Of a stretch of 64,000 nucleotides of DNA, positions 15,480-62,398 are shown in pieces. The notes under the pieces are model-generated. The model was given only the letters and a program-made list of their open reading frames with translations, was not told the DNA's origin and searched no databases. A program made the position numbers and the translations under genes. Where the stretch lies: IMG/VR virus record IMGVR_UViG_3300009514_000001, positions 158,006 through 222,005 of that record; one strand, written 5' to 3'. Within the stretch, counting starts at the first letter, position 1. Each line of letters opens with the position of its first letter.

Positions 15480-15778
15480 CATTCTGTTAGCACCCAAAAG
15501 GGCCCCCGAGACGTTTCCGCTCGGGTCTGCATGTCACCATGCAGATCGGACCATATCACCACCCCCTAGTAGGGGTGTCCCGCGCTGCGCTCTAGCAATC
15601 TCTCGCTAGAGGCCTACTCGAAACCCTAGACGACAAGTCCGTAGGTCCTTTCGTGGTCTCTACACCTTCCCAGGAGTTTCCCCCTGGGCTTGGCTCGGGA
15701 TTGTCTGACAATAGTCAGAGTTCCCCCGAATTCACGGAATTTTCACCACCAGGTTACCCTAGTGGGCCGCTCAAATTA
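15480..15778 (-). mobile_element. Group I intron 2 of the tail tube gene (299 nt, no ORF)
   Basis: Upstream exon ends in U and the intron ends in G. P1 is GGCCGU/GCGGCC with a U-G pair; P10 is UUGA/UCGA. Core elements: P AATTCGGGGGAA, Q AATCCCGAGC, P7 GACCA/TGGTC. Removal restores ...WP-F-DIE... in frame. Confidence 0.9.
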
Positions 15779-15840
15779 ACGGCCATCGATGATGTCTCAG
15801 TGAACGAACAGGTCCGTCTACCCCACCAGCATATCCTGTG
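15779..15840 (-). CDS. Tail tube protein, micro-exon 2 (62 nt)
   Basis: Encodes TGYAGGVDGPVRSLRHHRWP and is in frame with exons 1 and 3 after splicing. Confidence 0.85.
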
Positions 15841-30437: not shown

Positions 30438-32555
30438 TTAGTCGACCTCCTCGTACTCCTCCATGGCCTGGATGAGGAGGCCGCGGGCAACCGCGTTGAG
30501 GGGGTTCTCCGCCTGACGGATTTCGCTGATCTTGATGGGGAACCGGCGGCGGTGCTTCTTGAAGACCTTCTGGAAGAGATCCATGAACCCACCAGCCTTC
30601 GAGGTCCCTCCGCTGACGATGATGGGGATGGGGTTCGTCAGCTCAATCTGACAGTTCGCCACGAACTGCTCCGCCACCTTCTTGAGGGCGTAGGAGATAA
30701 GTTCCTCGTAGTAGAAGGACAGCGCCTCCCGGTCCCGGAACTTGGACTCCTCGCCTTCACTCGGGTCGAGGAGGTTGATCCCGGCCTCCTTGATGCGACA
30801 GATGCGAGAACGCGTCGAGTTACGGCTCTTGGCCGCCCCCGCGTCAATCCAGTCGCCACAGTTGTGGACAACCATACCCGGAGAGGAGAAGGAGTGATGT
30901 TTAGAGGCTACTCGGACATCGTAGACCCTGCCGTCGTAGGGAACTTGGTCAACCCTCTTAACGACGAAACAGGCGAAGTCCGGCTTCTGTGGGTGGAGGT
31001 TGACACCTTCGTGTGCAAGGAGAGTGTCCAGAAGGGTCTTGGATAGGTGACCGACAATACGAACGTCGTAACAAGGCTTACGACCCTCGATTCGCACCCC
31101 CTTTGAGTTGATTCCGCCCTGTCTGGGCGGTCTCTTGAGGACACTATGGCGAATTCCGAACCTGTTGAGTAGGTGATGCACCAACAACACCACATGTAGA
31201 GAGGTGTTGTGGATGGTGTGGCGCTTCTCCTCTTCCGTCGAGTCGCTATCCAGAAGACCCTCCAAAACCCCAAGTGCCATGCTGTCGGGGATATTACGCA
31301 CACTCAGAGGAAACGTCTTCTCCCCCTTCTCGTCGTAAAACCGGGCCTTCAGGTGCCGGGCGACAGGTGTGAGGTGGAGCTTTACCCTCGTAAGGTTCTC
31401 CTTCGGGTCATCAACGACCTCTACCTCACGATGAAACAGGACGGAGCACACCTGGGCATACTTGCGAACCAGGTGTTGGTCCCTGCGGTTGATTGCAAAC
31501 TGGACGAACCGCGAGTCCTCTGTCCGGGGTCCGCAAGAGCCGTCCCCCAGAAACATACCCAGGAATTTGCCTAGGTTCCTGGCAGTGGCAACGGTAATAT
31601 TCCGGCCCCCAAGGCGACCGAAGTAGTAAGGCCCAGAACACTTCTTCTCAGTCTGGATAGTCGGAACCCCGACAACGTCCCCCTCCCGAAGAGAGCCTGC
31701 GGCTACCCATTGCCAGCCGAACCGATCCCTCACGAAAACCCGGTGATCTCGGGTCATCTTGTGAGAGAACGCGGGAAGGTGCTCCAGGAACACCTCCACC
31801 AAAGAGTCCCGAGAACCGTTGTCCATCCTCTCTAGGACTTCGACAAACCTCCCCTGGGCGTCGAGAACGTAATCCCCCTCGCGTACCTCGGCCATCGGCA
31901 CAACGCCGCGACGGGTAATAACAGGAAAATCCCCCGCCAAACATCTGGAAATCGAAAATTCCAGGACCGGTCGGGTCTTGAAGCTCAGAGCGACATTCGT
32001 CATCCCCGATCCGAACGACATCGAGATACCAGTGTAGTCGTCCTTGAGGCCCTCGGAGAAGACGATGGCCATGGCCTCGTTCGAGTCCCAGGCCTCGTAG
32101 CCGCACTCGGTGATGATGCGCTCGAAGGCCTTCTTGTGGTAGATCACGTCCCTATCTGCGTCGATGGGGGCGGCGGGGACGCTGTAGTAGCAAATCTCCC
32201 CTTCCTCCTGAGGCTCGCCCAGGACGCTCCTCACCAGGATGCCGAGGATTTCGAGAGAGTCCACCTCGCTGGCCGACACAAGACCCTGGGCGAGAGGACG
32301 CCGGGCCTCCTCCCTCATGATGCCGGCAAGCTCCATGGCGTCATCGCCGACGACGATGAGGTCCTGGTCGCGCTCGACGAACGTGATCTTGCTCCGGCGG
32401 AGCATCTTCCGGTCGTCCTTGTCCAACGTGATGAACGCGTCGCGGACACGACGGTAGCTCACCTTGTCCGCCGTCTGCCTGGCCGCGACAAGATTCATGG
32501 TTCCGATGTCGAGGCCTATGCCTTTAACCACTTGAACTTGTTTATCTTTTCCCAT
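30438..32555 (-). CDS. Actin-fold (MreB/ParM/FtsA-like) ATPase containing a cis intein; about 344 aa after splicing
   Basis: Phosphate-1 GLDIGT, phosphate-2 SFGSGMTNV, adenosine motif IIVSGGTS, and C-terminal NAVARG. Confidence 0.8.
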   Translation of the reverse strand: MGKDKQVQVVKGIGLDIGTMNLVAARQTADKVSYRRVRDAFITLDKDDRKMLRRSKITFVERDQDLIVVGDDAMELAGIMREEARRPLAQGLVSASEVDSLEILGILVRSVLGEPQEEGEICYYSVPAAPIDADRDVIYHKKAFERIITECGYEAWDSNEAMAIVFSEGLKDDYTGISMSFGSGMTNVALSFKTRPVLEFSISRCLAGDFPVITRRGVVPMAEVREGDYVLDAQGRFVEVLERMDNGSRDSLVEVFLEHLPAFSHKMTRDHRVFVRDRFGWQWVAAGSLREGDVVGVPTIQTEKKCSGPYYFGRLGGRNITVATARNLGKFLGMFLGDGSCGPRTEDSRFVQFAINRRDQHLVRKYAQVCSVLFHREVEVVDDPKENLTRVKLHLTPVARHLKARFYDEKGEKTFPLSVRNIPDSMALGVLEGLLDSDSTEEEKRHTIHNTSLHVVLLVHHLLNRFGIRHSVLKRPPRQGGINSKGVRIEGRKPCYDVRIVGHLSKTLLDTLLAHEGVNLHPQKPDFACFVVKRVDQVPYDGRVYDVRVASKHHSFSSPGMVVHNCGDWIDAGAAKSRNSTRSRICRIKEAGINLLDPSEGEESKFRDREALSFYYEELISYALKKVAEQFVANCQIELTNPIPIIVSGGTSKAGGFMDLFQKVFKKHRRRFPIKISEIRQAENPLNAVARGLLIQAMEEYEEVD
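30861..31943 (-). mobile_element. Intein with LAGLIDADG endonuclease (361 aa)
   Basis: Starts CLAGDFPV; block B MTRDHRVF; endonuclease motifs LGMFLGDG and LEGLLDSD; block F VYDVRV; ends VVHN followed by Cys+1. Confidence 0.92.
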
Positions 32556-37651: not shown

Positions 37652-39115
37652 ATGAAGCAGTACCTCAACCTCCTTCGTGACATCCTGGACCATGGCCAAC
37701 AGAGAGGGGACCGCACAAACACCGGTACTATCAGTCTCTTCGGCCCACAGATGGAGTTCGACCTTCAAGAGGGATTCCCAGCGACCACGACCAAGAAACT
37801 CTTGTTTCGCAAGGTGAAGACGGAGCTTCTCTGGTTTCTTCGAGGAGGAACCAACGTGGCCTGGCTTCACGAGCACAACAACCACATTTGGGACGAGTGG
37901 ATGTTGTCTGACTTGGAAGTTGGAGTCCCCAGCGAAGAAAGACCCCTGATCTGGGTGGACCAGAAAAACGCGACCTCTGCCCCATTCTCCGGAAATCTCA
38001 GCACTCTGGGACTCGATGCCTCAAGAGGGTCGACGGACGACCGACTCCGAAACCTGTGGGTGAAGATCATGCAGAGGTGCTATGACTCCGACCACCACAA
38101 CTTCAGGTTCTACGGCGGAAGGGGGGTGGGTGTCGTCAAAGAGTGGCACGACGTGAACACCTTTGTGCACGGCGTGAAAAACCTACCTAACTGGGGACAC
38201 AAAAACCGTTCGTGGAACGAATACGAACTCGACAAAGACTACTACGGAGCGACAGCCTACGGCCCCGACACCTGCGTATGGCTCCATACGAGCGAGAACA
38301 ACTACTACACCCTGGCAGTATGTCCTGTCCGTATCACACCCCCGACTGGACGTCCCCTGATATACCTAACCCAGGCACACGCGGCACGAGACCTAGACAT
38401 CTCTACCTCTGCCATGAGCAGGTATTTAGAACGTGGCTCCATTGGTCGCCCCTACGGCAGAAGCAAGCGCCTCGAAGGGTGGGGGTTTGAGTACCTCAAG
38501 AGACCGGGAAAATTCCTGAGGATGGCTTTCTCAAAAGGCGATCTGGGCCCGGTGTATGGGTCTATGTGGAGATCATGGCCCAGCACAAACGGAGACATAG
38601 ACCAACTGGCAGGAGTCATCCATGGCATTCGGAACCACCCGGAGTCCAGGCGTCTTCTAGTGAGCGCTTGGAACGTCTCCCTCATTGAGAAGATGGCTTT
38701 ACCTCCCTGCCATATCCAATTCCAATTTTACGTGCGCCACGCCGATGACGGACCGGACTTCCTCGACTGCAAGATGTACCAACGCAGCGCCGACATGTTC
38801 CTCGGGGTGCCTTTCAACATCGCGTCCTACGCCCTGCTGACCCACATGATGGCGCAGGTATGCGAGTTGCGGCCGGGGCGCTTCGTCCACACCTTCGGGG
38901 ACGTCCACATCTACGCAAACCATGTCGACCAGGTCGAAGAACAGCTCTCAAGAGAGCCCGGGGAGGTTCCCTCCCTGTGGCTCAACCCCGACATTGACGA
39001 CATCGACGGCTTTGGTCCGAAGGACATCAGGCTGGTCGACTACAAACACCAAGGCGTCATTCGAGCCCCCATCGCTGTTGGGGGAACCGGATTCATCCCG
39101 ACCATCAAGGAGTAA
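37652..39115 (+). CDS. thyA: Thymidylate synthase with an in-frame endonuclease-like insertion
   Basis: Motifs DRTNTGT, ELLWFLRG, IWDEW, GDLGPVYG, MALPPCH, YQRSADMFLGVPFNIASY and GDVHIY. Confidence 0.95.
   Translation: MKQYLNLLRDILDHGQQRGDRTNTGTISLFGPQMEFDLQEGFPATTTKKLLFRKVKTELLWFLRGGTNVAWLHEHNNHIWDEWMLSDLEVGVPSEERPLIWVDQKNATSAPFSGNLSTLGLDASRGSTDDRLRNLWVKIMQRCYDSDHHNFRFYGGRGVGVVKEWHDVNTFVHGVKNLPNWGHKNRSWNEYELDKDYYGATAYGPDTCVWLHTSENNYYTLAVCPVRITPPTGRPLIYLTQAHAARDLDISTSAMSRYLERGSIGRPYGRSKRLEGWGFEYLKRPGKFLRMAFSKGDLGPVYGSMWRSWPSTNGDIDQLAGVIHGIRNHPESRRLLVSAWNVSLIEKMALPPCHIQFQFYVRHADDGPDFLDCKMYQRSADMFLGVPFNIASYALLTHMMAQVCELRPGRFVHTFGDVHIYANHVDQVEEQLSREPGEVPSLWLNPDIDDIDGFGPKDIRLVDYKHQGVIRAPIAVGGTGFIPTIKE
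37901..38536 (+). mobile_element. In-frame HNH-type homing-endonuclease-like insert with an HTH (about 212 aa) inside ThyA
   Basis: Lies between IWDEW and GDLGP. Sequence W..IMQRC...YGGRGV.V..EW...F...ELDKD...YGPDTCVW....NN, followed by a NUMOD1-like HTH AARDLDISTSAMSRYL. Confidence 0.75.
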
Positions 39116-43373: not shown

Positions 43374-44266
43374 ACCTTCACCCTCTTGGCCACGCCCGCC
43401 TTTCCGTACTTGAACACACGCAAATGGCACTTGGCCTTATAGTCCTTGGGCAAGTCATCCGCGAACCCCTTGAACTTCACCTTTCCCGGTACCAGGTAGA
43501 GGTTCAGGCTCAGATCTTCCAGGTTGAGGACCATGAGGGATGTCGTACTCATGTTGTCCGTGTCACGGACGATGTTGTAGGGGTCGTCGGGGTTCTTGAG
43601 AGAAGGCTTGCGTAGGGCGTCAGCAATAGTCTTAGGCTTCGAGAGGGAACTAAGACCCCTCACGGCCCTGTCATGGCGTTCCACAGAGGAGCGGTGGTCA
43701 TCCCCTTTGGTGTAGCCAGCATCAGGATAGGAGAACCCATGGTTGGTGCGCACCCAGGTTTTACCCTTCGGAACCCTCTTGATGACCGCCTCGTGCTTAC
43801 GAGTCATCTCGATGCTGACCGTGGAGGAGGAGTCACTTAGAAACGTATGACCCTTTATCCCTCCCTTGAATGTCAGAAGGGACTCCTGAGCCTGGGCTAG
43901 GGTCTTCTTCCCCAGAGCGCGGAAGATGCGAGGACCGTCCTTCGACTTCTTCTTCTTCTCGGACTTCGCAATTTCCTTCTCAGCCTCATCCCGACCGACC
44001 TGGAGAGCAGAGTTCACGATGCCAATACCGTATTCGTTCAGACCCTCGACCCAGCCGGTCAACACGTCCTCCAGGTAGAGAACCTCAACCCCGCCCACGA
44101 GGGTATGGACCACCCGCACCTCCGGAACATAGTTGCGATCTCTGGTCTTCACCAAACACCGCTCTCCGCCCCAGACCCCCGCGGCCACCACACATGAAGT
44201 GCGTATCCCGAACAGGCTCCGCACATATGCCGCCGCCACACGGCGGGCGATACTCCACCGATCCAC
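43370..44266 (-). CDS. Ntn-hydrolase (C45/acyltransferase-like) with a 24-aa propeptide
   Basis: Cys25 starts CVVAAG...KTRD; also EGLNEYGIGI and RTNH. Confidence 0.7.
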   Translation of the reverse strand: MDRWSIARRVAAAYVRSLFGIRTSCVVAAGVWGGERCLVKTRDRNYVPEVRVVHTLVGGVEVLYLEDVLTGWVEGLNEYGIGIVNSALQVGRDEAEKEIAKSEKKKKSKDGPRIFRALGKKTLAQAQESLLTFKGGIKGHTFLSDSSSTVSIEMTRKHEAVIKRVPKGKTWVRTNHGFSYPDAGYTKGDDHRSSVERHDRAVRGLSSLSKPKTIADALRKPSLKNPDDPYNIVRDTDNMSTTSLMVLNLEDLSLNLYLVPGKVKFKGFADDLPKDYKAKCHLRVFKYGKAGVAKRVKV

Positions 44267-44308
44267 TTCACCCCCAGGAAGGTCGACCGGACCTTCTACC
44301 TGGAGTGT

Positions 44309-44596
44309 TCATAGACAACTCACCGAGAGGCCAGCCTCCAGGAAGCCCCAGACATGCCATCCACATCCGGGCCGGGGACACAGGATTGAGGCGTTGATCT
44401 CCCCATTGTCCTCGATGGTGTAGTTGCGCAGGTCCTCGGCATGTTTGCCACACCCACCACAGATGAGGTGGACTCCCTCGTGGTGATTGGAGTCGTCGCT
44501 GTAGAACTAATGCATGAGGGCGACAGAGGGGCGCTCCGCCTCAACGGCCCTGTCGTAGTCGGTGAAGAACTCGGCGTGGAGAGCCTTCGAGACCAT
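44309..44596 (-). pseudogene. Small Cys/His-rich ORF interrupted by one TAG
   Basis: MVSKALH...ALMH*FYSDD...CGGC...ASILCPRPGCGWH; the TAG is at 44507-44509. Confidence 0.4.
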
Positions 44597-44797
44597 CCGC
44601 TTATGGGTTTCGGAAGGCAGCACGCACACAGGAGGACCTGAGAGGCTCAGAGAATGTCGCCCTTGAACTCACGGCCGCAGTGGGGGCAGGTGATTGGCAT
44701 GGTGTCCTCCGTCGTTGATGACGAGAGAACCATACCAGAAGGGACACGGACAGGCAAAAGATTGTGTAAGTATTTAGAATAGTTAAGAAAAACCGCC

Positions 44798-45430
44798 CTA
44801 CAAAAACGACCTAGGACTCAACACGCCCCGACCGACAGCGGGGCCGAAACTCGACCGGATTCCGATGCCAAATCGAGGCTGTTGGAGTCCTCGGAGGAGC
44901 TTCGTGGTCTGAATCTTGACCTCGGTGGCGCCCTTCTCGAAGTGAGCCTCGGCCTGATTCTTCAGGCTCTGGTACTTGGAAGATTTCTCTATGTCGAGAC
45001 TGATACCGCCAATGGAATATGAGTTGTGGGCCACCACACCATTGGTCAGCACAAAGTTCTGGTCCCCCGGCACACACAGGTCATAGGTATGCTCCTGAGG
45101 CTCCAAACGCTCGACGGAGGCCACCTCCACCTCCCGAAGAGTCCCGTCAAACACCACAGCCAAAGGCATTCCAGGTTCGATGCTGGACCCCTCAACCGCA
45201 ACCAGGCAGTCCCCTTGACGCAAAAAGAGGCTGTGGTCCTCCGTGCAGACTACCGAGAGACCCCCTACCAGGGCCACACACACCATCTCTTTGTGGTCTG
45301 TTTGATGCTCCATCACATCTGACACCACAGACTCAGAGACCTCTCCCGTTTCCGGGGAAACGGACCTCACCTTCAGAGTTCCCGCCAGGAACTCCTCTCG
45401 AATAGCCCTTGCAAGGTCTTGGTCAATCAT
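44798..45430 (-). CDS. Split neck-like protein, part 3: IntC2 (136 aa) plus C-extein (74 aa)
   Basis: ATG 45430 with SD. Block B CTEDHSLF, block F TYDLCV, and terminus VVAHN followed by SYSIGGISLD. Confidence 0.88.
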   Translation of the reverse strand: MIDQDLARAIREEFLAGTLKVRSVSPETGEVSESVVSDVMEHQTDHKEMVCVALVGGLSVVCTEDHSLFLRQGDCLVAVEGSSIEPGMPLAVVFDGTLREVEVASVERLEPQEHTYDLCVPGDQNFVLTNGVVAHNSYSIGGISLDIEKSSKYQSLKNQAEAHFEKGATEVKIQTTKLLRGLQQPRFGIGIRSSFGPAVGRGVLSPRSFL

Positions 45431-46383
45431 CGCCTCTCCTCCACCGCTCGCCGCACCCGAGAGATACATCCCTGGAGATCATTTTTCACCGCATGTCCAG
45501 GGAGGCGGACAACCGCCCACCCTCGTCTTGTCAAGTAGGTCTTGCTTTTGTCCAAACGTTGTGTGTCTGGACGCCCATCAAAACCACACTCGACACACCC
45601 GTGCCAATAGCAACCATCGACTTCGACGGCGATCTTCAACTCCGGGTGTGCCTCATCTAGGTGGTAGTACCCCACCTCATATTCTGTTTGGAACCCGACC
45701 AGGCCGCTCTGCTCCAGCGCCCGGGTAACCTCTCGGTGGAGCCTCGTATGTTTCTTCGTGAGGTGTCTACGAGCATTCAGAGCGAGTGCGAGGGACTTCT
45801 CCCTGTTGTCCCTGTGCCACCTCTCCACCTGCCCTCGCAAAGGACCTTCTGCCCAACGCTTTCTCGTTTCCTCTCCTCTCTGAACCCTCTGTTCGGGGTC
45901 CTGATTGAGCTGGCGAAGATGAGCAGCGGCTTGTTCCTTGTACCCCGAGGCGTGTAGGAGAAGAGAGCTTTCCGAAATCCTCTCCCTCGTCTTTTCCCCC
46001 GCCGGAGTCTGGAACCTTTTCTTCAGGGTCTCTGACTGAGCTTCTCTCTGAGCAGGCGACTTTGCCTTGTTACTCTGACACAGCCCAGAAAGTACGCGAA
46101 CCTCCTGGTGGTTCTTTCGATAGTCCTCCAGAGACTTCCCGGAACATGCTCGCAAATGCCTAGTCGTCACCTGCGCTAGGAAAGCCCCACACTCCAAACA
46201 GACGACATAGTGTTCCCCCTCCACCAAGTTGCTCAGGGTAGAGGGGTCAATCTTACGTCGAAGAGGGGAGGAGGCATTCGGAAAGAAGGACAAAACACCC
46301 CGGCCCAAGAGGGTCGCCAGGGCTCTTTGATTGAACCCAAAACGCAACATTACCTGACGTTGGGAGAGACCCTTAGCGGACAT
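45427..46383 (-). CDS. Free-standing zinc-finger plus Vsr/DUF559-type endonuclease at split site 2
   Basis: ATG 46383. LVEGEHYVVCLEC finger; EYEVG...DEA...IAVEVDGCYWH...GWAVVRL. Confidence 0.8.
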   Translation of the reverse strand: MSAKGLSQRQVMLRFGFNQRALATLLGRGVLSFFPNASSPLRRKIDPSTLSNLVEGEHYVVCLECGAFLAQVTTRHLRACSGKSLEDYRKNHQEVRVLSGLCQSNKAKSPAQREAQSETLKKRFQTPAGEKTRERISESSLLLHASGYKEQAAAHLRQLNQDPEQRVQRGEETRKRWAEGPLRGQVERWHRDNREKSLALALNARRHLTKKHTRLHREVTRALEQSGLVGFQTEYEVGYYHLDEAHPELKIAVEVDGCYWHGCVECGFDGRPDTQRLDKSKTYLTRRGWAVVRLPGHAVKNDLQGCISRVRRAVEERR

Positions 46384-47146
46384 CGTGCACCACCCTATGC
46401 AAGACCGAAATGGGGAGATCAAACTCCCTGCCATCGGAAAGGATAACACGAACCAACGTATCCCCGGACACTGAAAACTCGTCAGCGACCCAGTTCGTCG
46501 CGAGGGCGAACATGGCGTAGACGATGGCGCCCCAGACGATGAAGGGCTTCCAGGTCGACTTCTGCTGGATGAGGATGTCGAGGTTGCACAGACCTTCCGT
46601 CTCTGGGGGGAAGGCGTTCCACCAGGCCAGGGCCATCTCCAAGTAGCAGAGCAGCTCCTCGTCGGTCCAAATCTGTCCGAAGACCCGATTGAAGGCGCCG
46701 ATTCGACCCTCATGCTCCGGGGGGCGGAAGTGGTAGTTCCGGTCGGGACTATTGCTGACGACCACGCCCGAGACTAGCAACTGGAAGTTGTGCCAACCGT
46801 CCACCGTCATATCGTACATGTATCGTCGCGAAGGGAGTTGGCGCTTATTGAGGACAGGAACTGTAGTGGAACAGCCAGCCTTCACGCCGAGCACCTCCTG
46901 TCCCACCTCCAAGCGCTCACACTCCACCTTCTCCGTGGGGGACACAAAGACCCTGTGACCTCCAGTAAGGACCATCACTCCGCCGTCAGTTTCCACTTCC
47001 CAGATAGATTCTTGAGGCACTTCGGCACGACTGACCTCTTGTACAGTACGCCACTCCGTCTCGCCCTCAGGGGAGACGGAGAGGGTGCGTAGGTGCCCTT
47101 TATGGAAAGCCTCACGAATCTTTTTCTTGGCTAGATCAGACAACAT
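46373..47146 (-). CDS. Split neck-like protein, part 2: IntC1 (132 aa) plus middle extein (92 aa) plus IntN2 (33 aa)
   Basis: Block B LTGGHRVF, block F MYDMTV, terminus VVSN followed by SPDRNY. Later ADEF followed by block-A-like SVSGDTLVRV. Confidence 0.88.
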   Translation of the reverse strand: MLSDLAKKKIREAFHKGHLRTLSVSPEGETEWRTVQEVSRAEVPQESIWEVETDGGVMVLTGGHRVFVSPTEKVECERLEVGQEVLGVKAGCSTTVPVLNKRQLPSRRYMYDMTVDGWHNFQLLVSGVVVSNSPDRNYHFRPPEHEGRIGAFNRVFGQIWTDEELLCYLEMALAWWNAFPPETEGLCNLDILIQQKSTWKPFIVWGAIVYAMFALATNWVADEFSVSGDTLVRVILSDGREFDLPISVLHRVVHDVR

Positions 47147-48035
47147 CGAACAGGTCCTCCTCTGTCCACACGAAGAACAACCACCCCCTCTTGGACGCCT
47201 CCCTATGGGCTCTATCCAACCTTCTTCGGACTTCGCTCTCGACGGGCATCTGGAGCGTCCAGGCGGCTTTTACTTCAACCAGAGCTGTCGCCCCGTCCAA
47301 ATAGGTGACAACAAAGTCCGGCAATATCCAACTACGGTCATCCAAGACGAGGCGTTTCTCGTACTCAAAGGAAACCACCTTGAAATCCGATTCCAGCTTC
47401 TCCACGGCGGCCTTCTCATAGGTGCTACGTACCCAGAACTCCTTCCTCTCACACTTCCCGGAAACTACCCTGGACCCTTTGCCCCGTATCCACTTTGCCG
47501 GGTCCTCTGCGATCCTCTTCGCCTGTTCCCGAGAACGTCGGACTCTCTCCTCCTGGCTTCTGTGGAATTCGAGGAGAGGGTCTCTATACGAGGGGTCCTT
47601 CCACAGACGACGAAATCTGTCTGAAATTCCCTGCCGTCTCTCGGGGGTAAAGGAGGCTCGGAGGCTGTCAATCTCTTCCGAGGACCTGATCCTCCCTCTC
47701 AGGCTATCAAAAACACCGTCTTGCCACATCTTTTCGAGTTGTCCGGGACGTTTCTTTCCCTTCCATTGCGCCCCAAGATGACGGCCGGCCTCGCGTCGTC
47801 GATCCATTGCTGCCTCGCACCTAACAGCCTTCGTCAACCGATGAATGCCTGCGATAGACAAGCCCGTAATTTGACTCATTTCCCCCCATGACTTACCCGA
47901 TTCATGGAGGAAGGTGACAATCCGAGACCTTTTCTCTCGAACCCCTTTGGGAGGTCTTCCCTTCTTAGAGAAAATCTCCCAAGAGAGACCCTCTTGTTCG
48001 AACAGAGAAGCCAATTCCGGATGGACACTACCCAC
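47136..48035 (-). CDS. Free-standing HTH plus TnsA-like PD-(D/E)xK endonuclease at split site 1
   Basis: GGAGG SD and GTG 48035. RSTYE...FEYE...PDFVV...VEVK. Confidence 0.8.
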   Translation of the reverse strand: MGSVHPELASLFEQEGLSWEIFSKKGRPPKGVREKRSRIVTFLHESGKSWGEMSQITGLSIAGIHRLTKAVRCEAAMDRRREAGRHLGAQWKGKKRPGQLEKMWQDGVFDSLRGRIRSSEEIDSLRASFTPERRQGISDRFRRLWKDPSYRDPLLEFHRSQEERVRRSREQAKRIAEDPAKWIRGKGSRVVSGKCERKEFWVRSTYEKAAVEKLESDFKVVSFEYEKRLVLDDRSWILPDFVVTYLDGATALVEVKAAWTLQMPVESEVRRRLDRAHREASKRGWLFFVWTEEDLFDVV

Positions 48036-48519
48036 GAAGAACCTCCCACAGGTCTCCCATGCGAACATCCATGAGAGTCCCGTCTACATCTAGTCGTACC
48101 AACTCTTCCTCCCCGACACAGTGATCTCTGAGTAGGAGGCGGAGCTTGTTGACGCAGTCCTGTTGGGCTCCTGTCAAGGTGGCGACGCTGATTCCCTTGG
48201 AGATGACCTGGAAGTCCATGACCACTTCCTGAGACGCCTCTCCCGGGTTGAGCGTGAACGTCCACCGGATACGGTAGTCCCCCGCGACTGCGCTCGGGGG
48301 GACGAACAGGGCTGCGTAGTACTCCCCGATGACCGGGTTGACCGGCTTGCGGGGAACTCCCGGGGGGATTGGCACTTCCGTCTGTGGAGGGCCGGGGTCC
48401 AGGTAGAACAGCTCGTAGCTGATCTCGAACACATTGGTCGGACAGCCGTTGGCATCTTGGAAGAAGATACACAGGTCGCCCCGCTGGACTTCCTGACCTG
48501 GTGTGAACTGGATGGCCAT
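48028..48519 (-). CDS. Split neck-like protein, part 1: N-extein (133 aa) plus IntN1 (30 aa)
   Basis: LRLLLRDH followed by CVGEEELVRLDVDGTLMDVRMGDLWEVLRG and stop; block-A pattern. Confidence 0.85.
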   Translation of the reverse strand: MAIQFTPGQEVQRGDLCIFFQDANGCPTNVFEISYELFYLDPGPPQTEVPIPPGVPRKPVNPVIGEYYAALFVPPSAVAGDYRIRWTFTLNPGEASQEVVMDFQVISKGISVATLTGAQQDCVNKLRLLLRDHCVGEEELVRLDVDGTLMDVRMGDLWEVLRG

Positions 48520-48530
48520 GGGCGGTTATC

Positions 48531-48785
48531 TCAGGAAGCCATCGCCATCGACTTGAGGTCTCGAACGGCGTGGGCGTAGGTTTTGGGCCTGAAGCTGACG
48601 GCCGTATCGGCGAAGTAGGTCCGCCTCAAATCCTCGACGATGGGGCTATTCTCGAACACGAAGAACTTCCGGTGGCGACTGTTGGGGTCCTTCTCGACGT
48701 CGACTAGCTTGACGCCAGAGGCCTGGAGGAAAGCCGCCAGGTAGAGGTCGCTGATTTTGGTCGTCATCTGCTGACTCTTGCGCAT
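48531..48785 (-). CDS. Small DUF5659-like protein
   Basis: SDLYLAAFL..SG..L......FFVF pattern; AAGGAG SD. Confidence 0.55.
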   Translation of the reverse strand: MRKSQQMTTKISDLYLAAFLQASGVKLVDVEKDPNSRHRKFFVFENSPIVEDLRRTYFADTAVSFRPKTYAHAVRDLKSMAMAS

Positions 48786-48857
48786 CTATCTGTCTCCTTT
48801 CATCTTGGAAGGCACCCCTAAAGGGGCTTACCAGGGCCCTGGTATAGCCACCATACT

Positions 48858-48898
48858 GCGAACCCCCGGCCAGGAGGGTTCCTGTCGGGGGTTCCGCG
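48858..48898. terminator. GC-rich hairpin after the 48925 gene
   Basis: Inverted repeat gaacccccggccaggag...cctgtcgggggttc; no clear U-tract. Confidence 0.45.
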
Positions 48899-48924
48899 GA
48901 GCACTAGGCTTGTCGTGTCAGTCC

Positions 48925-49614
48925 TTAGAGGACTGCTCCGGTCTCGTCGTAGACGGCGACTGCGGACCCGGCGGTGCCGAGGTACTCGAAGGCCGCGTCC
49001 TTCAGCTTGGAGATGTGTCCCTCCGCCAGGGAGAGGTTGAAGAGTCCCGTCTGGTAGAGCTGGCGATGAGCGCCGGTTGTGAAGGCGCCACTGACGACGG
49101 GGTTGAACGTCGAACCGTCGGTATCGACGACAGACGCCGCCGGGAGGACGTACTCGTCCCCGTCCATGACGCGGAGGAGTTCGACGAGGTTCCCCGTCGA
49201 GTCGGAGCCTCCAGCGTCGGTCAGCTCAGTACTCGCTACAACGACAGAGAGCGCAGCATTGACCGTGGTGAGGGTCAGTGCGGTGCCCGCGTCGAGAATA
49301 GCAATCAGGCCTGCTGCGGCCGCATTGGCCTCAGCCGACGTGAGGGCATCCACACCAGCAGCGAGGCCGCCGGCCTCGATGTGGTCGATGAGGTATGCCG
49401 CGACGCCCTTGTACTCCGCCTGGGTCAGCAGGGCACCACCTCCACCCACGGAGGTGGCGACAGAGTCGTCCTGCGGACGACGAAGGTACTTGGTCTGCCC
49501 CGGAGGGCTGTACGTGAGCTGCTTCTGGCTCTCGTTCGGAATCAGGTCGAGAAGCTGGAGCTTGCCGGCAGGGATGTCAGCTCGCCTCAGCGCAACAAAT
49601 CGCTCGTTGGCCAT
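48925..49614 (-). CDS. Putative virion structural protein (229 aa)
   Basis: AGGAG SD; strong GC3; Ala/Gly/Thr-rich. Confidence 0.55.
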   Translation of the reverse strand: MANERFVALRRADIPAGKLQLLDLIPNESQKQLTYSPPGQTKYLRRPQDDSVATSVGGGGALLTQAEYKGVAAYLIDHIEAGGLAAGVDALTSAEANAAAAGLIAILDAGTALTLTTVNAALSVVVASTELTDAGGSDSTGNLVELLRVMDGDEYVLPAASVVDTDGSTFNPVVSGAFTTGAHRQLYQTGLFNLSLAEGHISKLKDAAFEYLGTAGSAVAVYDETGAVL

Positions 49615-61014: not shown

Positions 61015-61160
61015 CCGTTCTCCGAAACTTATGAAAATCTAGGTACACCTTGACTCCTGTTCGGTTCCTGCTTCATCGAGGCCGCCACCAGGAGACTAAC
61101 ATCCCCCGCCGGTCTTACGTCCTCTCCACAGACTGACACCGGGGAACTCCCGGCCAACTG
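61015..61160 (-). ncRNA. Putative omegaRNA scaffold/right end overlapping the tnpB 3' end
   Basis: TnpB omegaRNAs are known to overlap the gene's 3' end. The region ends ...GTTTCGGAGAACGG, and a similar 31-mer recurs at 63866-63896. Boundaries are inferred. Confidence 0.5.
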
Positions 61161-62288
61161 TTTCAAATTGATTGCGGCGTTCAGGTCTCGGCCAACACGG
61201 AGGCCACATTCGCCACACTGATACACGCGGTCCGACAAACTCAAGTCAGACTTTACTTTCCCGCATCCGGAACACGTCTTCGAACTAGGAAACCACCGGT
61301 CCGCCTCGATGACCTCAACTCCGGCCCACTCGGCCTTGTAGGCCAACTGTCGTAGGAACTCGGATAACGAGGCATCCGACAACGCTCTGGAGAGACGCCG
61401 GTTCTTCAGCATCCCAGAAACGTTGAGCGTCTCGACCACCAGGACATCAGCACTCTCTACGATCTCACTGGTCGCCTTGTGCAATGCATCCTTGCGGAGG
61501 CACGACACCCGATAGTAGAGACGAGCTACTCTGGCTCGGGCTTTCGCTCTGTTCCTGCTGCCTTTCTGTTTTCTGGCTAGTGCCTTCTGAGCCCGCCGCA
61601 AACGGCGCTGGCACCGGGCCAGGGCACGAGGGTTCTCGAATACCTGTCCGTCACTCGTTACCGCAAGAGACTTGATTCCGACATCCACCCCAACCACTTT
61701 GGTTCTCGGTCGCTGGGGCATTGTCAGAACGGTCTGCTTGACAGATAGAGAAACGAACCACCTACCGGCTCTACAAGAGACAGTGGCCGACAGGATTTTC
61801 ACGTCTTCCCTCTCGGGTCCCGGAAGATATCCAACCTCTTTCAGTCGAATCCATCCGAGCCTCGGGAGCTTGATGCTACGACCATCTTCGGAGGTCTTGA
61901 TGGACCCGGTCAGACGGAACTTGAGAGGGCTCCGATGACGGCTCTTGAATCTCGGGAACCCTTTCCTCTTCGCTCCCTTCTTACAGCGCCGGAAGAATCC
62001 TCTGAAGGCCCTATCAAGGTCTCTCAGAGCTTCCTGAGGAGCACACTTGGACACGCCATACATCCAAGGAACGCCACCTTCTTCGGGGTCGGTCCTCTTG
62101 AGCTTGTTCAGCTCCCGATGGAGTTCGATGTTGTTCGGGGACTTCCCGGTGCTCTTGTAGGTCTCTATCTTCTGTTGGAGCCCCCAGTTGTAGGCCCAAC
62201 GAGCCGCTCCCGCATGGCACCGAAGTGCCGTGCGCTGGCGGTTGTTCGGGTCCAACTCGACCCGATATGCTCGTTGGACGACGGACAT
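61029..62288 (-). CDS. tnpB: TnpB RNA-guided endonuclease (IS200/IS605 or IS607 family), no adjacent tnpA
   Basis: N-terminal AYRVELDPN...RWAYNW; GFPRFK; RuvC motifs VGVDVG, VVETL and RDLNAA; zinc ribbon CSGC/CGEC. Likely ATG 62288. Confidence 0.92.
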   Translation of the reverse strand: MSVVQRAYRVELDPNNRQRTALRCHAGAARWAYNWGLQQKIETYKSTGKSPNNIELHRELNKLKRTDPEEGGVPWMYGVSKCAPQEALRDLDRAFRGFFRRCKKGAKRKGFPRFKSRHRSPLKFRLTGSIKTSEDGRSIKLPRLGWIRLKEVGYLPGPEREDVKILSATVSCRAGRWFVSLSVKQTVLTMPQRPRTKVVGVDVGIKSLAVTSDGQVFENPRALARCQRRLRRAQKALARKQKGSRNRAKARARVARLYYRVSCLRKDALHKATSEIVESADVLVVETLNVSGMLKNRRLSRALSDASLSEFLRQLAYKAEWAGVEVIEADRWFPSSKTCSGCGKVKSDLSLSDRVYQCGECGLRVGRDLNAAINLKQLAGSSPVSVCGEDVRPAGDVSLLVAASMKQEPNRSQGVPRFS

Positions 62289-62398
62289 GGCTACTCGTTC
62301 CTCTTTTGGATTGAGGGGACCGGTGGGCCCAGAACCCCCGGGTAGGTCCAGAGCACCTACCAGGGGGTGTTCAATCAAACGAGTATCGTCTCGGGACC

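Follow-up and report, generated by a model that had tools for sequence, protein, structure and literature searches.

A phage gene divided into three pieces by two atypically split inteins, each split occupied by a nuclease gene

Layout of the locus and its uninterrupted homologues

The window analyzed here is a stretch of 64,000 nucleotides (nt) from the IMG/VR virus record IMGVR_UViG_3300009514_000001 (222,005 bp) and is designated locus L083 in our comparisons. On its minus strand, between positions 44798 and 48519, it contains a split gene made up of five successive overlapping open reading frames (ORFs), P1, N1, P2, N2, and P3. In this order, they encode a first extein (E1) with the N-terminal part of an intein (IntN-a), a TnsA-like nuclease, that intein's C-terminal portion (IntC-a) followed by a second extein (E2) and the N-terminal part of another intein (IntN-b), a Vsr/DUF559-like nuclease, and finally IntC-b with a third extein (E3). 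P1 (48028-48519, 163 amino acids [aa]) consists of E1 (residues 1-133; 48121-48519), with an N-terminal beta-sandwich domain and a helix and ending in LLRDH, and a 30-aa IntN (48031-48120, stop at 48028-48030), which begins at Cys1 with the block A motif CVGEEELV. N1 (47136-48068) counts 310 aa from its ATG, but its true start is more likely the GTG at 48035 (299 aa), because GGGAGG lies upstream and the N-termini of the family members agree. P2 (46373-47146, 257 aa) comprises a 132-aa IntC (46751-47146; block B TGGH, block F YMYDMTVDGWHNF, ending VVSN), the 92-aa E2 (46475-46750), which starts with a +1 Ser in SPDRNY and ends in ADEF, and a 33-aa IntN (46376-46474, stop at 46373-46375) opening with Ser1 in SVSGDTLV. 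N2 (45427-46383) encodes 318 aa. The P3 ORF is listed from 45469, but most plausibly starts at Met14 (45430), since the relatives agree and an ATGA overlap is formed with the N2 stop; from there, it comprises a 136-aa IntC (45023-45430; block B TEDH, block F TYDLCVPGDQNF, ending VAHN) and the 74-aa E3 (44798-45022 with the stop; +1 Ser, SYSIGG). Because neighboring ORFs overlap by 41 nt (8 nt if N1 begins at the GTG), 11, 11, and 4 nt, the locus is devoid of non-coding DNA, and no piece of the gene contains a frameshift or internal stop. The preliminary description of this DNA had reported the five-ORF overlapping layout, its motifs (TGGH, YDM, TEDH, YDL), and a 299-aa product; every motif and length proved correct, and the ORF translations give 133+92+74 = 299 aa for the exteins. 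The observation of a three-piece, double-split gene is thereby confirmed, and the pattern is far beyond chance, as many metagenomic contigs, independent of one another, show this architecture too.

The seven pieces (exteins and intein halves) were searched separately and then mapped onto the listed homologous proteins. E2 alone matched 352 proteins. Among the 120 homologues (protein clusters) listed, from which the architecture counts are drawn, 69 are uninterrupted E1-E2-E3 proteins, typically of 295-302 aa, 16 have the form E1-E2-IntN, and 14 the form IntC-E2-E3. Ten are IntC-E2-IntN, i.e., doubly split middle pieces as in the window, and three (E1-cis intein-E2-IntN) are contiguous at the first insertion site (site a) and split at the second (site b). 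The closest homologue listed, P0002, is 77, 77, and 79% identical to E1, E2, and E3, respectively. When 39 uninterrupted homologues are aligned (A1) and the window exteins added, E1, which aligns with residues 1-133 of these proteins, ends at column 141, E2 occupies columns 142-233, and E3 columns 234-306, with zero gap and zero overlap. The joined exteins, which had been proposed to form a single protein, thus have many contiguous counterparts, exactly colinear at both sites. In addition, the window exteins retain 50/50 invariant and 48/49 near-invariant columns of the 39 proteins. The sole near-invariant change is the site-a +1 residue, where 38/39 uninterrupted proteins have Asn and the window has Ser; the site-b +1 residue is usually Asp in uninterrupted proteins and again Ser in the window. 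Across the alleles, this position is Asn (site a) or Asp (site b) in the uninterrupted and Ser or Cys in the intein-bearing forms, and the Asn-to-Ser and Asp-to-Ser replacements would be exactly the changes that inteins require. A third architecture, with a 23-aa IntC in proteins of 146-149 aa, was read as a contig-end truncation and not as a canonical split, since the contig of P0057, the only one checked, starts a short way upstream of the gene.

As for the joined protein, an AlphaFold2 model of P0002 (predicted local distance difference test score [pLDDT] 77.8) places a beta-sandwich at the N-terminus (residues 1-105) and, after it, helices, a hairpin, and a disordered tail, with both insertion sites in low-confidence linkers. 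Foldseek searches with this model returned mostly sandwich matches (the BppU N-terminal domain, the TP901-1, 80alpha, and NF5 baseplates, minor tail proteins, and Bacillus phage G gp165), and the matches to baseplate chains cover the N-terminal sandwich only, with weak E-values (2e-3 to 2e-2 in the PDB) and low TM-scores. No extein match to the PDB was found by sequence. The 'head-tail connector' profile phrog_17327 is matched by 6/39 uninterrupted homologues (best E-value 3.1e-6; P0107, residues 160-263), and no match to it was obtained with the window pieces. Gp319 of Tunturiibacter phage Tunturi_5, 32.5% identical over 91% of the length and annotated as a head-tail connector (a non-experimental label), is encoded upstream of 'minor tail protein' and 'tail terminator' genes, and 4 kb upstream of the split gene, the window encodes a protein whose C-terminus is tail-fibre-like. 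For the neck-like character given in the preliminary description, the support consists only of one PHROG label and one GenBank annotation, neither of them experimental, and the N-terminal domain resembles a BppU-N/Ig-like sandwich. A virion neck or tail role is plausible, but only at the annotation level.

Two inteins, two nuclease families, and their distribution

We compared IMG/VR loci using the best 80 of each of two scans (305 and 163 loci) and found four states at each insertion site: empty, a contiguous in-frame mini-intein (L087/L088, L099, L100, and L103 at site a; L098, L115, and L138 at site b), split with a nuclease gene, and split either without a nuclease ORF or with a remnant of one. 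The insert lengths at sites a and b are 0, ~460-570 nt when contiguous, ~570-760 nt when split minus the nuclease, and ~1240-1510 nt when split plus the nuclease. The window IntN-a shares 70% identity with the first 30 residues of the contiguous intein in L087, and IntC-a is 54% identical to the same intein, whose short variable linker coincides with the break in the window; IntN-b is homologous to the start of the three contiguous site-b inteins. With IntN of 30 and 33 aa and IntC of 132 and 136 aa in the window (IntN 29-43 aa in relatives, median 33 at both sites), the split occupies an atypical early position and not the canonical endonuclease site (IntN ~100 aa, IntC ~40 aa). A maximum-likelihood tree built from 45 inteins separates those of site a from those of site b into two groups (100/100 support), and contiguous and split forms are interleaved inside each group.

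Both inserts carry the residues of a splicing intein. The window has block B (TGGH/TEDH), block F (YDM/YDL), and the junctions SN followed by S (intein a) and HN followed by S (intein b). The block A nucleophile is Cys1 in 22/22 split site-a IntN and Ser1 in 16/16 split site-b IntN. Thr61, His64, Asp112, His119, and Asn132 of IntC-a are invariant in 10 diverse doubly split middle pieces, and the splicing residues are invariant even between copies of 25-55% identity. IntC-b matches PF14890 with 38.9 bits, over the cut-off of 35.8, and ends in His-Asn in 16/16 split site-b copies. An intein profile matches 48 solved intein-type chains, the best being Pho RadA (5.6e-13), and the best-matching solved inteins are the archaeal RadA, TFIIB, and PolII mini-inteins, with the latter two matched over profile positions 1-158. 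The contiguous L087 site-a intein is modeled by AlphaFold2 with a pLDDT of 96 and a predicted TM-score of 0.90, and its only weak stretch, residues 31-40 between helices 21-30 and 37-45, corresponds to the split point in the window. For intein a, the Hint fold is thus predicted from a contiguous homologue and the family profile and not from the joined window halves. The check for such a fold turned out favorably in each respect: a full-length match to solved inteins, a confident model of the contiguous homologue, and a split point in a weak loop.

The ratio of nonsynonymous to synonymous substitution rates (dN/dS) was limited to some pairs and segments, dS being saturated for most pairs; it lies at 0.04-0.7 for every segment where dS could be computed. 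Between L086 and L090, it is 0.057 for E1, 0.065 for IntN-a, 0.27 for IntC-a, 0.042 for IntN-b, and 0.14 for IntC-b, and between L084 and L085, 0.051 for IntN-a and 0.086 for IntC-a. Both intein halves are under purifying selection. Because L090 and L085 are without nuclease genes and yet have low dN/dS, the split halves are kept for their own sake.

N1 (47136-48068) is a free-standing TnsA-like PD-(D/E)xK nuclease gene with a helix-turn-helix (HTH)-like N-terminal region. Of the site-a nuclease genes, 15/16 form one family (mean identity 46%), and 14/15 members of this family match PF08722 (TnsA-like N-terminal; best E-value 2.6e-8). N1 itself scores 22.7 bits, under the cut-off of 26.5, and keeps all the invariant E...PD...ExK residues of the family (E218, P250-D251, E265-x-K267), so the TnsA-like assignment proposed earlier holds through the family and the intact catalytic residues. 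N2 (45427-46383), likewise free-standing, matches DUF559 (23.2 bits, above the cut-off), Vsr, and a Ros/MucR-type C2HC zinc finger. The site-b nuclease genes (13/13, IMG/VR and window) are one family with 43% identity, in which DUF559 and MTES_1575 are found in 11/13 members and Vsr in 6/13; the family profile matches 3hrl (5.5e-6), I-Bth0305I (3r3p, 2.5e-4), Vsr (1cw0, 5e-3), and Ros (2jsp, 0.015). The Vsr-like call for N2 is borne out by the DUF559, Vsr, and 3r3p/1cw0 matches. There are 0/208 cross-matches between site-a and site-b nucleases, and nuclease family is strongly associated with site. In L084, an HNH gene occupies the same site-a split point.

The comparison of related loci reveals both gain and decay of the nuclease genes. 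L097 retains a 92-aa TnsA-like remnant at the site-a split point, and L089 (5458-6774) has a 438-aa ORF in which the nuclease's N-terminal half, with the HTH, runs on in frame into IntC-a-E2-IntN-b, a decay intermediate of the TnsA-like nuclease gene. In L093, compared with L092, 771 nt of the nuclease ORF are cleanly deleted in frame, with flanks that are 99-100% identical, and L090 has lost both nuclease genes present in L086. Between L098, with a contiguous site-b intein, and L155, with a split intein and nuclease, nucleotide identity is 97% on the downstream side of the nuclease point and 80.6% on its upstream side; 954 nt in L155 (6362-7315) stand in place of 13 nt in L098 (6731-6743), and the identity step lies exactly there. 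Such a step marks a recombination boundary at the nuclease position, of the kind known from phage homing nucleases (PMC10448857). Given the family-site association, the patchy presence, the decaying copies, and the identity step, N1 and N2 are putative homing endonucleases, with a presumed nuclease activity and target. The nuclease genes would thus be selfish, mobile, and decaying, and invasion of the loop of a contiguous mini-intein appears to be what creates the split.

Rather than being unique, the window belongs to a widespread class. At least 305 contigs in IMG/VR, the longest of 619 kb, contain the gene, which is also present in an unannotated 485-kb GenBank 'uncultured phage' record (L170, LR745208.1, 351207-358704), where site a is split with a TnsA-like nuclease. 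No near-identical phage record was found by megablast. Six contigs of metagenome-assembled genomes (L164-L169; bin labels Methylobacter, Legionellales, Omnitrophota, Verrucomicrobiota, and Planctomycetota) contain the gene as well. Four of these contigs are spread over as many named phyla, one belongs to a Methylobacter bin, and the last has no classification; they are probably phage DNA mis-binned with bacterial genomes. The split gene is single-copy and, in the window, adjoined on its upstream side by an 84-aa DUF5659 gene (48531-48785, minus strand), which is likewise upstream in L001 and L002 with extra ORFs between; synteny behind the DUF5659 gene is kept in relatives. In some of them, a DUF7487 protein gene follows shortly downstream (L163, 2218-3627; L173, 5815-6837). 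Searches of PHROG and Pfam with the neighboring genes gave almost no matches.

Elsewhere in the window, a 705-aa ORF (30438-32555, minus strand) encodes a Volactin-type actin homologue (PF25216, E-value 9e-68) interrupted by a canonical intein (PF14890, residues 266-565) with a LAGLIDADG domain. A thymidylate synthase (37652-39115, plus strand; PF00303, E-value 1.5e-108) matches a 266-position profile over residues 2-476 and hence carries an in-frame insert of ~210 aa; the insert matches HNH endonuclease PHROGs (E-value 8e-28), and no intein motifs are visible in the translation. The window further contains a full-length group I intron (15527-15788, minus strand; RF00028, 77.4 bits, E-value 6e-18) and an IS605 OrfB/TnpB-type protein (61029-62378, minus strand; PF01385, PF07282, PF12323; phrog_506, E-value 7e-117).

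Probable double trans-splicing and its alternatives

We regard it as likely that the locus, in an uncultured jumbo phage, encodes one virion-type protein of ~299 aa, interrupted by two split mini-inteins, whose exteins E1-E2-E3 are joined by two trans-splicing reactions. In this reading, two different mini-inteins would have invaded the gene between LLRD(N/Q/H) and N (site a) and between ADEF and D (site b), and a free-standing homing-endonuclease gene would later have inserted in the loop of each intein, past the first ~30 residues, resulting in an 'atypical' split with a short IntN and a long IntC. The five ORFs are probably on one transcript, with translation coupled via the overlapping stops and starts. 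The IntN-a attached to E1 would associate with the IntC-a of the middle piece, whose own IntN-b would associate with the IntC-b of the third piece, and two trans-splicing reactions (Cys1/Ser+1 and Ser1/Ser+1) would ligate E1-E2-E3 into the contiguous polypeptide seen in relatives. The two nuclease genes would ride along selfishly, propagating the arrangement through homing and recombination before they decay. The interpretation as a three-piece, double trans-splicing assembly, put forward in the preliminary description, is supported by the present analysis, in which every check named there that could be run in silico was passed.

Several points weigh against it. Ligation is a prediction from sequence, and the function of the exteins is a proposal from annotation labels. 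The window IntC-a scores only 20.0 bits with PF14890, under the 35.8 cut-off, and ends in Ser-Asn instead of His-Asn, although Ser-Asn, in which the penultimate His is replaced by Ser, is the conserved state at this site (18/22 copies). Inteins a and b are homologous and have the same hydrophobic pattern, making cross-reaction conceivable; IntN-b (mean net charge -3) and IntC-a (+1.6) are electrostatically compatible and share the middle polypeptide, so their pairing could cyclize E2. In L172 (2021-4507) and L176 (10001-12487, on a 259-kb contig), the site-a intein is contiguous and the gene ends in a site-b IntN that precedes a 5'-truncated TnsA-like nuclease, indicating that the association of nuclease family with site is not absolute. 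IntC-E3 was not found within 10 kb on either side of this gene; hence, the third piece is not always adjacent and may here be dispersed or lost.

With ligation so far deduced, one could envision a non-covalent complex of the three fragments, in which the intein halves only dock and no peptide bond is formed. A parallel would be the phage ribonucleotide reductase that is broken by a homing-endonuclease gene and remains active without splicing. The penultimate Ser of intein a is non-canonical, and atypically split inteins have been described as frequently slow or inefficient (PMC11766414). However, such docking would leave unexplained the invariance of all splicing residues among copies that are only 25-55% identical, and only a nucleophile in use would lead one to expect Ser or Cys in place of Asn or Asp at +1 in intein-bearing alleles; we consider the docking complex improbable. 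A similarly small probability is given to the case in which only one intein still splices or the pairs cross-react, so that two-piece ligations, E1-E3 mis-ligation, or cyclized E2 would be the main products. Although the inteins are paralogous (IntC-a and IntC-b 34% identical) with the same IntN pattern, and the IntC...IntN topology of the middle piece is the one used in engineered cyclization, IntN-a and IntN-b are only 11-21% identical inside one genome, and the mis-pair of IntN-a (mean net charge -6.5) and IntC-b (-5.9) should repel. Eight loci are interrupted at both sites (L002, the window, L086, L089, L090, L091, L098, and L109), and six of these, the window included, are split at both, L098 being excluded because its site-b intein is contiguous; both nuclease genes are present in the window, L086, and L091. 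Such recurrence, also seen in the ten doubly split middle pieces among the 120 protein clusters listed, together with the purifying selection on both inteins, argues against this case. From the divergence of the pairs and the recurrence of the double arrangement, we infer that pairs a and b are orthogonal.

Genes can also be inactivated by selfish nuclease insertion, and the locus might be a pseudogene wrecked by two such events, with a phage that tolerates the loss or holds a second copy; the lack of a third piece near the L172/L176 gene could be taken in this sense. The intact invariant extein positions and reading frames of the window, a dN/dS far under 1 for both the exteins and the intein halves where loci are split, and the single-copy gene in its conserved place behind the DUF5659 gene make this very unlikely. 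Equally hard to credit is a bypass of the nuclease ORFs by RNA splicing or frameshifting, so that each intein would be made in one piece and splice in cis, perhaps with the nuclease nested in it as a domain. Large phages commonly have intron-borne nuclease ORFs (PMC12880540), and this genome contains the group I intron mentioned above. Nevertheless, the Rfam scan of 44000-49500 gave no intron match even at E-value <= 1, while the same library detects the intron at 15527-15788, and the removal of the nuclease genes by RNA splicing, named at the outset as a competing possibility, accordingly finds no intron at the locus. The overlapping ORFs leave no non-coding DNA between them, the deletion variant L093 retains a stop and a separate start, and the frame relationship of the five ORFs varies among relatives, which argues against a conserved programmed frameshift.

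Relation to known systems and implications

Fractured genes, in which split intein halves are separated by a free-standing homing endonuclease gene, have been described previously (Dassa et al. 2009, PMC2677866). They share with the window the same-strand order of N-terminal host part with IntN, nuclease ORF, and IntC with C-terminal host part, the phage or metagenomic origin, and, in one of their two nuclease families, a Vsr-like enzyme as in N2. In contrast, they have one split per gene (one locus with part of a further intein), located at the canonical endonuclease position with spacers of 27-51 nt, and their hosts are enzymes of replication or nucleotide metabolism, whereas here two splits lie at the atypical early position between overlapping ORFs, in a virion-type host protein and with a TnsA-like nuclease at one site. 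AceL-TerL and GOS-TerL are natural atypically split inteins with IntN of 25 and 37 aa (PMC11766414, PMC11923092), and among atypical natural splits one is termed rare (PMC11766414). The short IntN and long IntC are common to both, and the Ser1 of intein b is found in GOS-TerL, but the host protein differs, and the only sequence match obtained is a weak one to the engineered CatC chain (6dsl_B, E-value 0.056). Moreover, unlike the TerL type, the window intein family includes contiguous, split with nuclease, and split without nuclease forms of one intein.

Two Hint-type contiguous inteins, and thus three extein segments, are also known in one gene from the crAss-like TerL (PMC7886860); these cis-splice in one ORF, whereas here both are split and three polypeptides must meet. 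A parallel in layout is engineered tandem trans-splicing with two orthogonal split inteins (e.g., PMC12707363, PMC7090010), in which an N-piece with IntN1, a middle piece between IntC1 and IntN2, and a C-piece with IntC2 likewise require pair specificity. Those systems are man-made mixes of unrelated inteins, while the pair described here is natural, resides in one gene, and recurs in many phages. Among Vsr-like (EDxHD) homing endonucleases, I-Bth0305I (PMC3239194) is related to N2 through the 3r3p, Vsr structure, and DUF559 matches; N2, known from its sequence, differs by an extra Ros/MucR-type zinc finger, an N-terminal HTH-like region, and its location inside an intein gene and not an intron. 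General remarks on fragmented genes in huge phages are available (PMC12880540). A natural gene assembled via two split inteins was not described in the literature searched, an absence that is not proof. The locus appears to combine a fractured gene with atypically split inteins, and its natural double split is apparently undescribed.

On balance, and with some reserve, we favor the view that this is the first recognized natural family in which three polypeptides become one protein by means of two co-resident, mutually specific, atypically split inteins (Cys1/Ser+1 and Ser1/Ser+1). Its middle piece would have evolved to avoid self-cyclization, the TnsA-like nuclease would act as an intein-associated homing endonuclease, and the full life cycle would be recorded, from a contiguous intein, through splitting by nuclease invasion, to a permanent split left by nuclease decay. 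Three-segment ligation requires orthogonal split-intein pairs, and the family supplies many natural a/b pairs, presumably tuned by evolution to work side by side. Pairs with an IntN short enough for peptide synthesis (~30 aa) are termed rare (PMC11766414), and efficient pairs without a cysteine nucleophile are scarce (PMC12707363); intein b uses Ser1/Ser+1, but contains non-catalytic cysteines. For annotation, such genes are now called five unrelated hypothetical ORFs, e.g., in LR745208.1. Because dozens of natural alleles cover each intermediate state, how split inteins evolve can be read directly from this family. If our interpretation is true, a structural phage gene can come apart into three genes through the insertion of selfish nucleases while the protein is preserved, and the split state outlasts the nuclease that caused it.

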